This document shows positions 17,142 to 57,036 of a DNA stretch of 64,000 nucleotides, one piece after another. Source of the stretch: Hyaloraphidium curvatum SAG 235-1 (lineage: Eukaryota > Fungi > Monoblepharomycota); the NCBI GenBank assembly GCA_025558095.1, contig JAIVFI010000023.1, positions 372,001 through 436,000 of the forward strand, read 5' to 3'. The position numbers and the translations under genes are program-made. Positions within the stretch are counted from its first letter, which is position 1; every line of letters begins with the position of its first letter. The notes under the pieces are model-generated. The model was not told where the DNA came from. It did not search any database and saw only the letters and a list, made by a program, of their open reading frames with translations.

Positions 17142-20100
17142 ATGTCAAGGCCGGAGATCGTAGCTGTGGATGCCGAGCAGACGGGAGCTACGGCAACCAG
17201 CACGCCGCCAACTGCCGCCACGAACGGCAAAGCTTCAGGGGCGGCGGGGACTACCTGGGCCCAGCTCGCCAAAGGCGTCAAGCCAGCACCGGCCGCCGAG
17301 GGCAAAGCCGCTGGCTCGGTCGACGAAACCGCCCGGCCCTTGTCGCCGTTATCCCAAGATTCTACGAAGATTGCTAACGGAGTTGCCAATGGAGACGCCG
17401 GCAGGGCTGTCATCGTTGAAGACGCAGATGGTGGGCGTGTGTGACGCCACAAGCCCCTTTAGCGTTTGCCTGATCGATTTCTCAAGCTTCACCATCCGAC
17501 GGCAATGCATCGGCTTCGCCAAAGGCTGCTGGCCCCGCTCCTGCGTTTGTGCCGGCACCCCCGCCGGTAAATGTTTGGAAAGTGCGAATGCAACAGCAGC
17601 ACACTCCCGGGACTGTGCCTTCCGGGGAGGAAACGTCTCCTGGCTCTGCCCCGGTATCCTCTTTCCAGGAAGAGCTAGGAAGAGACGCGTTTTTTGGTCG
17701 CGCTTCGAAGTCGGATCCGTTGACGGTCTGGCCGGGCTTGGCAGATGCGGCGAGCTCCAACGGGCCCGCCCCATCTTCAGCTTCGGACCTCACGAGCAGT
17801 GTTTCCGTCGCGGCTTCAAAAGCTGTGGGTCTTTCGTTGGTTGTCTCACGGGAGCTACCCCCAATGACTCGTTCGACCACTCAGCTTCCCGGCTGGAAAG
17901 ACCCGTCTGCTTCGAAAAAGAAACAGTGGACACCGCTCGAAGTCGACATCAAGGTGAGAAACGCGTCTTATCCGTCGCAGGCATCGGATAATGTCATCAC
18001 CTTCCAGTACAAGGATCCCCCTGCTGCGGCGCAGTACAAGGATTCCCAAGTCAAGGGGAAAAGAACTGCCTCATTTGCCGTCTCCTCGCACTCGAGGCAG
18101 CGTTCCGAGAGCGGAGCACAGTCCGCCAATGCTGCGTCGGCCCTCTCCGACGGCGGATCGCAACCCGTCGCTGATCAATACGGCGAAGATCAGTATGCTT
18201 CCATGTCGAGGGCCCAAGCGGACGCCGGAATGCTTAATGACAGCACGATCACCGAGCACCATCACGTCGACGGCCACGAAGTCACCATCCGAAAGCTGGT
18301 CAGCCCTGCCGTGTTGGATGCAATCAGGGGCAACGGCGGATCACCTGGCGGTCAGGCCTCGGGGTCTTTCGAGGGGAGCAACGGTGAAGCTCTGTTGTCG
18401 TTTGCACGGAATTGTTCCTGATGGACGCGAATTGCAGACGGAGAAAGCCTCGATGAAGGGAATGAGATGAAGTTCCAGGCCACGGGCGACGGGTCTGCGG
18501 ATGTGAACCCCAACATCGGTTACTTCCACCGAGGCGGGCCGCAGTACCGAGGCAATCTCTTCCCTCCTCAACCTCCCCCGAACCATCGCGGTCGCACTTT
18601 CGCTCCCACTTTTTCGGCCAACCGTTCCGGAAGCAACCTCGGAGGCCCCGTACCCTCTGCCGCGTTTGGCGGCTCATCCTCCTCTTTTGGATCTCGGCGG
18701 AATCCGAACGGCCCCTTTGAAGGCGCTTCCAAGGGACAGTCTTCCAGCGCATTGCTTACGCCGGGACAGCCGACGAACCAGTCACGGCGGGCCGCTTCGC
18801 TGCCGCCGCGTTCCTCACCTGGAGGAGCTGCGCAGAACGGAGCAAAGGGAGCGGGCACAAACCCCAATCAAAGCATGACACCGGGCAGGAAGACCGCCGG
18901 GAACGGGAACTCGTCGTTCAGCCCCAGCGGTCGGGGCGGACAGTTCTCGGGGGCGGCGGGATCCGCCCCGTCCTCTCCCCAAGGATCCCCGAGCGCTCAG
19001 TTCTACAACACCTACAACAACTACTACTACCAGAACTCTTACGGCTACGGGGGATATCCGTACGGACAGGATTTCGCCGCGGCGTCCGCGTCGACGTACT
19101 TGGCCGATCCGAGCTGGTACTCGACGGCCGCGCTCACGTCGCAGCATGTGCTCATGTTCCTGAAGGCCCAGATCGAGTGGTATTTTTCTGTGGAGAATCT
19201 CGTGAAGGATCTGTATCTGCGCCGGAACATGGACGCCGCTGGCTGGATCGACGCCAAAGTCATCGGTCAGTTTCGGCGCATCGTGGGCTGGATGGAGCAC
19301 CTGCTAGTTCTCGAAAACCATCTCGAAGGACCAGCCGACGACCCGTGGACCCTTGACCGCCTCGTCGAATCGGTGGAGGGTAGCGAATTCGTCGAGGTCC
19401 TTGTGCGGGACGAGGATTCGGGATCCGGCCCGAAGTTCCGAAAGCGAGAGGATTGGGACAAGTGGCTTTTGCCTCAGCCTGCCGCGTCGACCGCAGAGTC
19501 TGACTACACGTTGACGAATCCGGAAGATGGCGCAGCCGACACGGGATCAGCGGCTCTGTCGGACGCAGCTGATGTTGCAATGCAGGAGGAGGCACCCGTC
19601 GCCTCGGATGAAGCCGTGCTGGCAACCCGTGGCGATTCAGGTCTCGGTGCCGCCGAAACGGGCGCTGATCTGGTGGTCAATGTGGAAGAAGCTGAGGCAC
19701 AAGTGCTCGTGGAGGAGGTGGCCTTTGTGTCGAAGGATCCGGGCCCGGCAGATGGTCGGCCGGTGGCGGCGAATGAGTCAGCAAAGGTGGCCGAAGAGGT
19801 CTTCCAGTCGAGCCTCGAGAACGCGTTCGTCGATCACGATACAGATGGCAAGCAACATGGTCGCGCTGATGCGGAGTTTGGAGGCGCGACGGACGGGCAG
19901 AGCATGCCGGATCAGGAAACACTGACGCCGAGAGAGCGGAAACTGGATGGCCCCGAGGCTACATCCGATGTCGTCGATGAGGGTGCTGAGGAGGGTTTTG
20001 CGTTCAACGGAGACAAGGGCGATCAGCCACCAGCCGACAAGGCGAGAACGAGCTGGGCTGCCGCCGTGTCAGCCAAACCAGCGGCAGAGGCTGCTGGTGT

Positions 20101-53900: not shown

Positions 53901-54497
53901 CTGCGACGGGACAGCGTTTCGCGGTTGGGGAGGCTGCAGACAAGCCGCTGCGGATCCTGCTGGTCGAGGACAACGCAATCAACCAGCAGATTGCCCTCCG
54001 GATCATGAAGAAGGGCGGGTTCGCGGCCGACGTGGCCAACAACGGCCTAGAAGGGGTCAACGCCATCACAGAGAGGGTGTACGACTGCGTGCTCATGGAC
54101 GTGCAGATGCGTGAGTCCCATACCGTCACATGTCTTGTGATCATAACTCACCCTGCATTTTGCCGCACCAGCGATTCTGGACGGCTTCGAAGCCACGAAG
54201 CGGATCCGGGAGGAGATTCCGCAGGAGCGGCAGCCGACCATAATCGCGCTGACGGCAAATGCCCTCTTAAACGAGCGCGAAGCGTGCTTGCAGGCCGGGA
54301 TGGACAGCTACCTTTCAAAACCCGTCGATGCGAAGCATCTGATCGCTTCGATAAAGGCCTGCCGGCGTTTGGCGGCCGAAGCGGTCGTGGACGGTGTAGA
54401 CCAGGGCCTGGTCGCCGCGGGCGATTCCGAAACCACGCTCAATTCCGGCGTGCCTGATGAGCGGACAGCATTAATCACCCCGGAAAAGGCGGAATGA
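50962..54497 (+). CDS. Hybrid sensor histidine kinase: 7TM sensor (HisKA_7TM-like) - PAS - HisKA - HATPase - degenerate REC - REC
   Basis: Introns 51128-51185, 51491-51583, 52305-52359, 52404-52462, 52569-52625, 53343-53396 and 54111-54171 restore FLATMSHEIRTPMNGVIGM and ILDFTKIEAG; also NLLNNALKFT, DTGIGI, GGSGLGLAI, ILLVEDN and LMDVQMPILDG. Confidence 0.92.
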
Positions 54498-54619
54498 TGG
54501 CGGAAGGATGGAAAGGGAGCTAGCTCGCGCATACCAGCAATACCCGACTATGGCCTGTAGAAACTATGGCACTTAATTCTGTGTCTTGAACAAAGCTTCA
54601 GATGAAACAAAATTCAATG

Positions 54620-54758
54620 GCCCCCCGCTGCCGGGAACCGAGGCACCGTGTGCGTCAGCCGCGCCTGTAAGCCCGCCCCGAAGGGCACCCGGGCCTCGCG
54701 AGAGTTTTGTCCAGGCTGGGCTTCATGACGGGCCTCGGAACCGCGGCAACGGACGGGC
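54620..54758 (-). promoter_or_regulatory. Putative non-canonical SECIS element in the 3'UTR of the SelU-like gene
   Basis: Long hairpin with AUGAA (54726-54722) opposite UGAC (54657-54654); unpaired AAAA (54708-54705); helix CCGAGGC/GCCUCGG; apical C(UUCG)G hairpin (54686-54675). Confidence 0.72.
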
Positions 54759-54765
54759 GGGTATG

Positions 54766-55839
54766 CTACCGGTCGACATCCATGGCGTCCATCTCCATCG
54801 GCTCGCACCCGGGGCAGAAATCGTCCGCGGGCGTCACGGGCGAGGCCGGCTGCTCCGCCGCCGTCGCAGAGGACGGCGTCGGCGCCAACGAGCTGCCGGT
54901 CGCCGAGCGCGCCTTGAGTTTCTCGAGCATCTTCTGACCCTCGGCGCGCGCGTCGTCCAGGGTCTTGGGCCGCTTCACGCCGATCGGGATCGCGCCGGGG
55001 GGAAGAGCGCGGCGTGCGGGGGCCGCGGCCGCGGCGACGGCGGCGGTGCGGGCATACTCGAAGGAGAGCGAGGAAAAGTCCGTGCCGGGAGGCGCCAAAG
55101 ACTTGATGACTTCGACGACCTCTGCGGAATGGGATGCCACGTCAGCATGGGAACGGAGGAGCACCCCGCGTTCGACCCACCCTCAACAGACGCGTGGTCA
55201 CCGCTGGTCCTCTCCGGATACTCGTAGTGTATGCCCTTCATCGACACGATAAAGAGACCGCCGAGGATCCTGCGCAGGGCGCGGAGGGAGTTGAATGCGA
55301 GGCTCTGCGTGCCCCCGAGGCTGCTCCCCACCTGCCCTCCCCCGCACTGTCGCCCGCGTAGCCCTTGGATGACGCCCGGTAGTAGTTGGAGTAGATTGCC
55401 CTGCCGAGGAAGTTGGACAGGCCGACCTTGTTGAGCTTGCCGCTGAACATGGCCTTGTAGAGCGCCGTGTCCTCGTCGAGGAAGATCTCGTCCGACCTCC
55501 AGAAGGTCTCCGCGAACGCCGCAACGCCCAGCGACTCCTTGACCACGGCGGCCATGCGGACGCCGCAGGCGTGGATAGCGTCGCGGATGGAGGCCAGCTC
55601 GGACGCCTCCTCGCGGCACATCAATCAGCCTTTCAAGTGGGGACATCAGATATCAGACATATCCAGTGGTGATTCGGCGTCGCATCCGCACCTGGCCGGC
55701 GGACCAGCAGCAGCAGACACGGCTGGGAGGCCCACAGCTGCACGGCCGGAAAGGGTTCGCCGGGTTCGGGCAGCGCCCGCCGCAGCGTCGCCGCATTCAG
55801 CGCCGCCAGAGACGCGCGCGGCGGGTCGTTCGCCGGCAT
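54766..55839 (-). CDS. Peroxiredoxin-like 2A / Selenoprotein U family (AhpC-TSA-like) with UxxC; probable selenoprotein, 296 aa
   Basis: Exons 55839-55692, 55629-55332, 55269-55181 and 55121-54766 total 891 nt; reads LW..LLLLVRRPG-[TGA 55627-55625]-LMCREEASEL...IFLDED...GEGRILGGLFIV..GIHYEYPE..GDHA, matching the FAM213A/PRXL2A pattern RRPGCxxCREEA. Confidence 0.88.
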
Positions 55840-56007
55840 CGCGCCGGGCGTGCCGGGGACCCCGCCGGATGCGGCCGTTCGGGGGAGCCGGGGAGCGGGG
55901 GACGCGGGCCGTGCGGAAGCGTGGACGACCACTTCGCACCGCACTCCGCCAGCGAGGAGACTGACAATCGCGTCCATGACCGCCCGTTGGCCTTAGGAGC
56001 AGGCGCA

Positions 56008-57036
56008 ATGGCGACAAAGGCCGCCTACAAGGTGGCCACGCCGTGCTCGGCCCCCACCGCCGTCCAACCGCGCCTCCACCACCGCAGCGGCTCACGAAAG
56101 AGTACAAGTCGCTGCAGGACAACCCCCCTCCCTTCATCCTCGCGAGGCCCCTCGAGTCCAACATCCTCGAATGGCACTACGTGATCCGCGGCCCGCCCGA
56201 CTCGCCCTACGCCGGGGGCGAGTACCACGGCAAGCTCATCTTCCCCTCCGACTACCCGTTCAAGCCGCCGGCGATCAAGATGCTGACGCCTAGCGGACGG
56301 TTCCAGATCGACTTTAGGGTACGATTCGTACCTGCTGCGGGAATTCGTCGGTCTGACCCCGTCGGACCCCTCCCGCCGTCTTTGTTCCACGCTCTTGTCG
56401 TTCTTCTTTCGACGTTCATTCCCTGGAAACTCTTCAGCTATGTCTGACCATGTCCGACTACCACCCGAACACGTGGAACCCGGCGTGGTCTGTGGCGACG
56501 ATCCTGACGGGGCTGCTGAGCTTCATGGTCTGTCGCCGTCTCCCGGAGCCCCCTCCGCCTCTCATGTCCTTTCTCGACAGCTTGAAGACACTCCGACGAC
56601 GGGCAGCATCACCACGACCGCCGCCGAGAAGCGCGTGCTGGCCCAGCGCTCTCACGCCTGGAACCTGCAGAGCGCAAAGTTCAGGGACGTCTTCCCGGAG
56701 CTCGCCACGCCCGAGATGGTACCGCTGGAAAAGTGCATGCCCGGCAGCGTGTCAAAAATGGAGGCCAAGTCAGAGGAGGCCAAGCCCGCGAAGCAGCCGA
56801 GCGCGCCGGCGGTCGGGAACGCGCCCGAGAAGACGGACGGACAGGCGCTCCCGAACGGACGATCCGCTCCCGTGCCCGCGGAAGCCGGTGCCGGGGCACA
56901 TCCGGCGCAGCCGATGCGTCCGCTGCAGGAGCGCGAAAGGGGGACATCCTGGGCGAGCTACCTCACCTACGTGCTCGTCGCCATCCTTGGGGTCGTCACG
57001 TACCGTGTCGTCGCGCGGTTGCGGGAGGAGCTCTAG
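56008..57036 (+). CDS. UBC6: Tail-anchored ER ubiquitin-conjugating enzyme (Ubc6/UBE2J2)
   Basis: RLTKEY, NILEWHYVIRGPPDSPYAGGEYHG, YPFKPPAIKMLTPSGRF, SDYHPNTWNPAWSVATILTGLLSFM and a C-terminal TM. Confidence 0.95.

Follow-up and report, generated by a model that had tools for sequence, protein, structure and literature searches.

Does a fungal gene that carries a single in-frame TGA end at that codon, or is the codon read as selenocysteine (Sec)? The question is raised by a 64,000-nucleotide (nt) stretch of the genome of Hyaloraphidium curvatum SAG 235-1 (GenBank assembly GCA_025558095.1, contig JAIVFI010000023.1, forward-strand positions 372,001 to 436,000). This stretch is hereafter called the window, and positions are given in its coordinates. 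On its minus strand, at 54766-55839, a preliminary description made from the DNA letters alone had placed a probable selenoprotein gene of the SelU/PRXL2A family with an in-frame TGA at the catalytic position. Until 2018 fungi were said to make no use of Sec, and to our knowledge no more than about a dozen early-diverging species are yet known to do so. Based on the analyses reported here, we consider it very probable that the locus is a functional selenoprotein gene. Its product would be a 296-residue SelenoU-type PRXL2A thiol/selenol oxidoreductase with a thioredoxin fold and the redox centre Sec51-Leu-Met-Cys54. The preliminary description had called the protein fungal and had noted that Sec is absent from Dikarya; H. 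curvatum is indeed a non-Dikarya fungus, which we take to belong to the Monoblepharidomycetes.

The TGA codon and its counterparts in the PRXL2A family

Direct reading of the minus strand gives a gene of four exons (Table 1), whose joined frame holds 296 sense codons up to a TAG stop at 54768-54766. The frame has a G+C content at third codon positions (GC3) of 0.89 and a single internal TGA, codon 51. Removal of intron 1 (donor G/GTGCGG at 55692/55691, acceptor ..GAAAG/GC at 55630/55629) leaves CCA G/GC TGA TTG ATG TGC CGC GAG GAG, that is P-G-U-L-M-C-R-E-E, and the wider spliced reading is ..LLLLVRRPG-U-LMC-REEASELAS... The coordinates, codon number and intron borders given in the preliminary description were all correct on direct reading. 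The same is true of its observations that the remaining frame is intact and that the next two downstream acceptor AGs, which would take out 20 or 23 nt, both shift the frame.

Similarity searches were run with single exons, with the open reading frame (ORF) at 55241-55624 of the window, or with the truncated public protein described below (P0032). Exon 2 alone matched the Pfam family AhpC-TSA_2 (PF13911) with 38.4 bits against a cut-off of 27 (E 1.9e-9), and P0032 matched the same family with 58.1 bits (E 1.4e-15). The exon-by-exon Pfam search gave no match on exon 4. In a word-index search, all 31 of the 31 matches were vertebrate PRXL2A, FAM213A or selenoprotein U, with 36-42% identity over exon 2, and fungal relatives are named 'Peroxiredoxin-like 2A' in UniRef. 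The assignment to PRXL2A as nearest relative is based on these match names rather than on a subfamily tree with PRXL2B and PRXL2C. The closest solved structure is that of a prostamide/PGF synthase (PRXL2B; PDB 9us9; E 2.5e-10, ~30% identity). Cys2 of P0032 (Cys54 here) aligns with Cys47 of 9us9, which puts Sec51 at 9us9 position 44 by register; we take Cys44 to be the first Cys of the CxxC of prostamide/PGF synthase. The Pfam match, the PRXL2A relatives and the structure match all agree with the family originally proposed for this gene.

Full-length Cys homologues read ..LW..QP.L..VVRRPGCxxCREEA.., and the TGA aligns with the first Cys of this motif. The motif itself, [U/C]-x-x-C in an RRPG..CREEA context at the start of the domain, is present here as RRPG-U-LMC-REEA. 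Exon 1 aligns with the N-termini of both Cys and Sec homologues, with L35, P40, R47, R48 and P49 invariant. Placement of the TGA at the first Cys of CxxC, as claimed in the preliminary description, is borne out by alignment with the Cys homologues, by homologues that have a TGA themselves, and by the 9us9 register. By analogy with the family, Sec51 would attack and Cys54 would resolve within the U-x-x-C pair, and the two would pass through a Sec51/Cys54 selenenylsulfide redox cycle on the thioredoxin fold, as in other U-x-x-C oxidoreductases.

The homologues with a TGA were found through a peculiarity of public annotation. A HMMER search with exon 2 against 1.84 billion representative proteins returned a 244-residue protein of 100% identity (P0032), which exact look-up identified as KAI9016090.1, a hypothetical protein of H. 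curvatum encoded on a contig of 699 kb. It opens MCREEA.. at Met53, two codons after the TGA, and is therefore without the Sec and the 50 residues before it, a truncation that had been predicted for standard annotation of this gene. The family set drawn from the exon 2 search comprised 101 representative homologues (P0032-P0132). RR[PA]GCxxC occurs in 39 of them, and another pattern is seen in 29, which begin M/L-C-R/K, exactly one residue ahead of the resolving Cys. The DNA was examined for every such truncated protein whose contig could be obtained. Each had a TGA in frame, two codons ahead of the annotated start, after a conserved open frame that reads ..LW..QP....RRPG and ends at the RRPG. 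This was the case in four of four independent homologues (five contigs: L020, L041, L042/L043 and L057, with L042 and L043 being two contigs of one homologue). L020, which is 53% identical over exon 2, reads ..QPCIILLLRRPG-TGA-LMCREEAS. Its N-terminus is similar in style (MPPNNPPKA.. vs MPANDPPRA.. here), and its intron 2 has the same position and phase as in H. curvatum. There is no intron at its TGA site; the TGA lies in an uninterrupted exon, which does away with the idea of splicing as a means to bypass the TGA. Gene callers appear to shorten the Sec forms of the PRXL2A/SelenoU family in a systematic way.

The closest relatives by identity (61%) are P0033/P0133 from a JGI metagenome (3300059473). 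They begin M-[F/L]-E-K-E-E, with Glu in the place expected for the resolving Cys.

One alternative is that UGA51 simply acts as a stop codon, with exon 1 as no more than a short upstream frame and with a 244-residue product that starts at Met53. GenBank annotates the gene in this way, and TGA is an ordinary stop in the Hyaloraphidium genome. Nevertheless, such a product would have neither the first redox residue nor the first strand, which is conserved. Protein-level conservation of exon 1, with both Cys and Sec homologues, extends to the RRPG that directly precedes the TGA, and the position of the TGA is kept in the four independent homologues. Moreover, a SECIS-like element and Sec machinery are present, as described below. 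We regard a plain stop as very unlikely.

Relatives with a Cys at this site occur in the chytrids Entophlyctis, Homolaphlyctis, Gorgonomyces and Terramyces, in the Zoopagomycota Dimargaris and Tieghemiomyces, and in Diversispora and Mortierella. A maximum-likelihood tree was built from 50 domain sequences that each had at least 125 residues and a recognisable motif; P0033 and P0034 were among those left out. In this tree the Cys forms of chytrids make up the sister clade of the Hyaloraphidium protein (support 91/91), and the gene is therefore a resident, vertically inherited fungal gene. A predicted Sec form beside chytrid Cys forms fits a possible replacement of Sec by Cys where the Sec trait was lost.

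The C-terminus of the protein is a low-complexity extension of ~110 residues (54766-55090) with the sequence FCPGCEP. A C-x(2-7)-C pair lies within the last ~20 residues in 15 of the 101 family representatives, and tails with such a pair include those of P0039, P0042, P0043, P0045, P0048, P0064, P0071 and P0081. It is tempting to speculate that the CPGC tail serves the U-x-x-C site as a mobile second redox pair.

Selenocysteine machinery and candidate recoding signals

Components of the Sec pathway were sought in the same 31.9-Mb assembly. A tRNA-Sec gene scored 78.2 bits against a gathering score of 47 and was called SeC with anticodon TCA by ARAGORN. SepSecS was matched with 198.9 bits over three exons, and SelD/SPS with 169.8 bits summed. 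At locus L006 (G000:C2:991466-991939, minus strand) the SelD/SPS match has an in-frame TGA in ..ELKG-U-GCKV.., which we take to be the canonical Sec site of SelD/SPS; SelD/SPS is therefore itself a selenoprotein. Domain III of EFSec was found with 54.5 bits by a eukaryote-specific model that matched none of 14 control prokaryotes. The candidate for PSTK is a second KTI12-like P-loop kinase at C2:720 kb, with TIGR03575/TIGR03574 as its best families at a weak 22-32 bits; these scores fall below the cut-offs because only exon pieces were scored. PF08433 (KTI12) gave one locus only, probably KTI12 itself, which was rejected. Thus, of the Sec machinery implied by the preliminary description, tRNA-Sec, SepSecS, SPS (with a Sec codon of its own) and EFSec were recovered, and PSTK is represented by a weak match only. 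A genome with no tRNA-Sec or EFSec, which that description had listed as evidence against a selenoprotein, is not what the scores for these two components indicate.

Five of the ten long high-GC3 open frames in the window end in TGA, including the neighbouring gene. With TGA serving as an ordinary stop, the code is therefore standard and any recoding would be gene-specific.

A selenocysteine insertion sequence (SECIS)-like element starts 40 nt after the stop codon, in the 3' untranslated region (UTR) and inside a spliced transcript contig (X1, see below). In its minimum-energy fold, helix I has 9 bp and is followed by an internal loop whose 5' strand carries AUGA (54726-54723) and whose 3' strand carries GA (54656-54655). 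Helix II consists of two paired stretches, of 4 bp and then 5 bp, separated by a 2x2 internal loop. An unpaired AAAA at 54708-54705 (..ACAAAA..) is followed by an enlarged apex with two small GC-rich stems. The flanks of the element resemble those of three SECIS elements found by Rfam (L011, L012 and L013) and of a fourth element at L016, all of which read C-AUGA-(A/C)G ... AAA ... (C/U)GA. L016 (G000:C29:387520-390822, minus strand, ~2040-1185) is a PRXL2C/AAED1-like paralogue that reads ..GRNLL-TGA-YVC... Its SECIS-like element (AUGA..AAA..GA) lies ~40 nt after a TAG stop, has an apex larger than usual, and is not among the genome-wide Rfam SECIS_1 matches. SECIS-like hairpins were also seen ~45 and ~100 nt after the stops of the homologues L041 and L042.

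The specificity of this pattern was estimated with a scan for sites that combine ATGA, correctly spaced AA, and GA with at least 9 of 12 pairs in helix II and no fewer than 4 bp in helix I. The scan recovered the candidate and four of four positive controls (L011, L012, L013 and L016). Background matches came to one further site on the window strands (128 kb), four in 400 kb of random genome strands and two in ~118 kb of other loci. This makes ~7 matches in 646 kb, or ~1 per 100 kb of strand, and the chance of a right-strand match in the ~620-nt 3' UTR is <1%. The only other match in the window, 19608-19689 on the plus strand, lies inside a 679-residue La-domain-like reading frame and was dismissed as chance. 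Rfam matches to purD, mir-1545, mir-431 and SNORD88 near the gene at E<=10 were likewise regarded as chance matches, and with Rfam gathering scores as the threshold the entire window had no match.

A second candidate signal is a hairpin shortly after the UGA. In this gene its fold is weak (z-score only -0.2 to -1.0); the hairpin at the same place in L020 is strong (z ~-5), and that in three other Sec forms is moderate. Hairpins starting ~8-14 nt after the UGA, with differing sequences, were present in all five Sec-form homologues examined, and also in one of the two Cys forms examined.

Based on these observations, we propose that the four-exon transcript is spliced into an mRNA that carries UGA at codon 51, a step shown in the X1 contig. 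The SECIS-like element would then recruit SBP2, EFSec and Sec-tRNA[Ser]Sec from its place 40 nt past the TAG, and UGA51 would be decoded as Sec rather than as a stop. It is possible, if doubtful, that the recoding signals are a variant unseen by standard tools, in which the SECIS apex is enlarged to a small three-way junction and is joined by the post-UGA hairpin, with the CPGC tail as a second redox centre in the protein.

Read-through of UGA51 by a near-cognate standard tRNA (Trp, Cys or Arg) instead of Sec-tRNA would suit the failure to find SBP2 and a SECIS that is atypical and missed by Rfam. However, the genome keeps tRNA-Sec, SepSecS, SPS and EFSec, and its SPS has a TGA at the canonical Sec site. 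In addition, the TGA of codon 51 aligns with a redox Cys, making a classic Sec/Cys pair. There is little probability, in our view, that a near-cognate tRNA decodes this codon.

Transcript, independent copies and features of the locus

Four public runs carrying the gene were compared over window positions 54500-56100 in the form of assembled contigs, which show presence and give no expression level, transcript ends or absence of minor isoforms. The contig of run X1 (1554 nt, minus strand) aligned in four pieces with 0 mismatches. It skips exactly the three introns of Table 1 (CT..AC on the plus strand, hence GT..AG on the gene strand), joins 55692 directly to 55629, the junction that the preliminary description had singled out for checking, and keeps the TGA of codon 51 unchanged. 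It begins at 55882 and extends 354 nt past 54500, thus spanning the SECIS region; its far end may be a merge with the transcript of the convergent neighbour. This contig represents a mature mRNA that retains the UGA, and it shows the gene to be transcribed. Run X2, which has the same organism label and comes from another study, gave an unspliced DNA contig that is identical over 55523-55698 and keeps the TGA. The contig of run X4, a wastewater metagenome, is ~98% identical and also keeps the TGA. Of its five differences, two substitutions and two single-base indels fall in intron 1, and the remaining one, at 55523, is a synonymous change of GTT to GTG in Val85.

These copies bear on two further explanations. 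Apart from the fact that a one-base change from TGY to TGA would suffice, nothing specific suggests that the TGA arose through faulty assembly or through a recent nonsense change in a gene decaying into a pseudogene. The transcript contig, the X2 DNA and the diverged strain of the X4 metagenome all have the same TGA, and homologues share a TGA at the codon 51 position. The rest of the frame is intact with its high GC3, and the sole exon variant is synonymous, so that an error or pseudogene is extremely improbable. That a different, dominant splice form removes the TGA is scarcely credible, even though contigs drop rare or alternative forms, for the single transcript contig uses the 55692/55629 junction, the next two acceptor AGs shift the frame, and the L020 orthologue has its TGA in an uninterrupted exon. 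A TGY in place of the TGA and a splice form without it had both been named in advance as signs against a selenoprotein. Neither was seen: TGA stands in the X1 transcript, the X2 DNA and the X4 metagenome contig, and the only transcript contig uses the predicted junction.

Several points weigh against a selenoprotein at this locus. We infer incorporation of Sec at UGA51 from the gene, its relatives and the genome, and not from protein-level evidence. The element in the 3' UTR departs from the usual form, in that 37 nt separate AAAA from the 3' strand of helix II, an apex that exceeds those of the other SECIS elements in the genome. Its folding energy is not better than that of shuffled sequences (z -0.75), and Rfam SECIS_1 does not report it at E<=10 in scans of 54000-56000 and 54630-54765. 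The criteria of the SECIS scan were set post hoc, after the candidate had been seen. In the machinery, the score of the PSTK match lies far under the curated cut-off, and no SBP2 was identified, although this does not show it to be absent; the L7Ae-domain matches inspected were ribosomal proteins L7a/eL8 and L30, with the remaining matches uninspected. Finally, our reading of X1 as an RNA run is a guess, for which its three exact intron removals argue, and contigs cannot exclude minor splice isoforms or show true transcript ends. With these points taken into account, we still hold a functional selenoprotein gene to be very probable.

Table 1. Features of the predicted SelenoU gene of H. curvatum, in window coordinates
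Feature	Position	Strand	Basis or remark
5' UTR	55840..55882	-	Transcript contig of run X1 starts at 55882; contig ends do not define transcription starts
Exon 1, coding part, Met1 to first base of Gly50, ending ..LWASQPCLLLLVRRPG	55692..55839	-	Aligns with homologue N-termini
Intron 1, 62 nt, GT..AG	55630..55691	-	Skipped in X1 transcript contig; absent in L020 orthologue
TGA, predicted selenocysteine codon 51, first position of U-L-M-C	55625..55627	-	Aligned with Cys or TGA in homologues
Exon 2, core of AhpC-TSA_2 domain	55332..55629	-	Pfam PF13911, E 1.9e-9; PRXL2A relatives
Possible hairpin a few nt after UGA, GGAGGC..GCCUCC	55578..55619	-	Weak fold here
Intron 2, 62 nt, GT..AG	55270..55331	-	Skipped in X1; position and phase as in L020
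Exon 3 (ILGGLFIV..GDHASVE)	55181..55269	-	Matches P0032 exactly
Intron 3, 59 nt, GT..AG	55122..55180	-	Skipped in X1 transcript contig
Exon 4, coding part: domain end, Ala/Pro-rich extension of ~110 residues ending ..FCPGCEPMEMDAMDVDR, TAG stop	54766..55121	-	Reading frame
SECIS-like element, 3' UTR	54640..54736	-	Minimum-energy fold and pattern scan

The gene lies between two neighbours. The divergent one, on the plus strand, is a ubiquitin-conjugating E2-like gene with an intron after 56031, and its contig begins at 55944. It would share with the SelenoU gene a divergent promoter region of ~60 nt (55882-55944), the contig ends not being true starts. The convergent neighbour is a hybrid histidine-kinase gene with a receiver domain, whose ORF ends at a TGA at 54495-54497. 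The X1 contig reaches into its 3' end (54146-54500), which may reflect overlapping 3' UTRs or a merge of convergent transcripts by the assembler.

Relation to known SelenoU proteins and significance

The predicted protein resembles vertebrate SelenoU/PRXL2A (FAM213A; for example, fish and bird SelenoU1) in its AhpC-TSA_2 domain, in the RRPG-[U/C]-x-x-C-REEA, GEG..GG and GDH motifs, and in having Sec in place of the first Cys of the pair. In contrast, the vertebrate proteins are without the ~110-residue Ala/Pro-rich CPGC extension. The Hyaloraphidium gene also differs in its fungal structure, with three introns of ~60 nt, and in a SECIS-like element whose enlarged apex is missed by an Rfam model trained mostly on animals. 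Among named proteins, the nearest relatives come from chytrids and other early fungi and are called 'peroxiredoxin-like 2A'. They share the motif context, and several have C-terminal Cys-pair tails; however, they have Cys where the Hyaloraphidium gene has UGA/Sec. PRXL2B (PDB 9us9) has its CxxC in the same register, but it is a Cys protein of another subfamily, and the likeness says nothing on prostaglandin chemistry here.

Fungal selenoproteins were surveyed by Mariotti et al., and the final version of that work is said to have appeared in Nat Microbiol in 2019. In the preprint, SelenoU was found as a selenoprotein in some Sec-using early fungi but was reported missing from the one monoblepharid included, Gonapodya prolifera; a SECIS was detected for only 5 of the 16 fungal selenoprotein genes (Mariotti et al., bioRxiv 10.1101/314781). 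Those SelenoU proteins and the present one belong to the same family and point to Sec use in non-Dikarya fungi with eukaryotic Sec machinery. The preprint holds 0 mentions of Hyaloraphidium, and we liken the two by family, not by sequence comparison. Sec use has also been mapped over 137 early-diverging fungi, of which 11 genomes encode Sec (Amses et al., PMC9457484). No paper that ties Hyaloraphidium to a selenoprotein catalogue came up in a full-text literature search. Fungal SelenoU as a selenoprotein is thus already known, and the Hyaloraphidium gene adds to a known type.

In conclusion, this study adds a transcript-supported SelenoU gene, predicted to encode a selenoprotein, to H. curvatum, a fungus of the same class as Gonapodya. 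The gene is also a clear annotation failure, in that the GenBank protein is without its predicted catalytic residue. If the SECIS variant and the post-UGA hairpin are both functional, they could help explain why 11 of the 16 fungal selenoprotein genes in the 2018 survey were without a detectable SECIS, and SelenoU would join the few genes with a Sec redefinition element. A SECIS-like element missed by Rfam would be useful for improving SECIS detection in fungi. The interest of the locus lies in this element, in a SelenoU record for the monoblepharids, and in the scale on which Sec forms of the family appear to be truncated at the N-terminus in databases.

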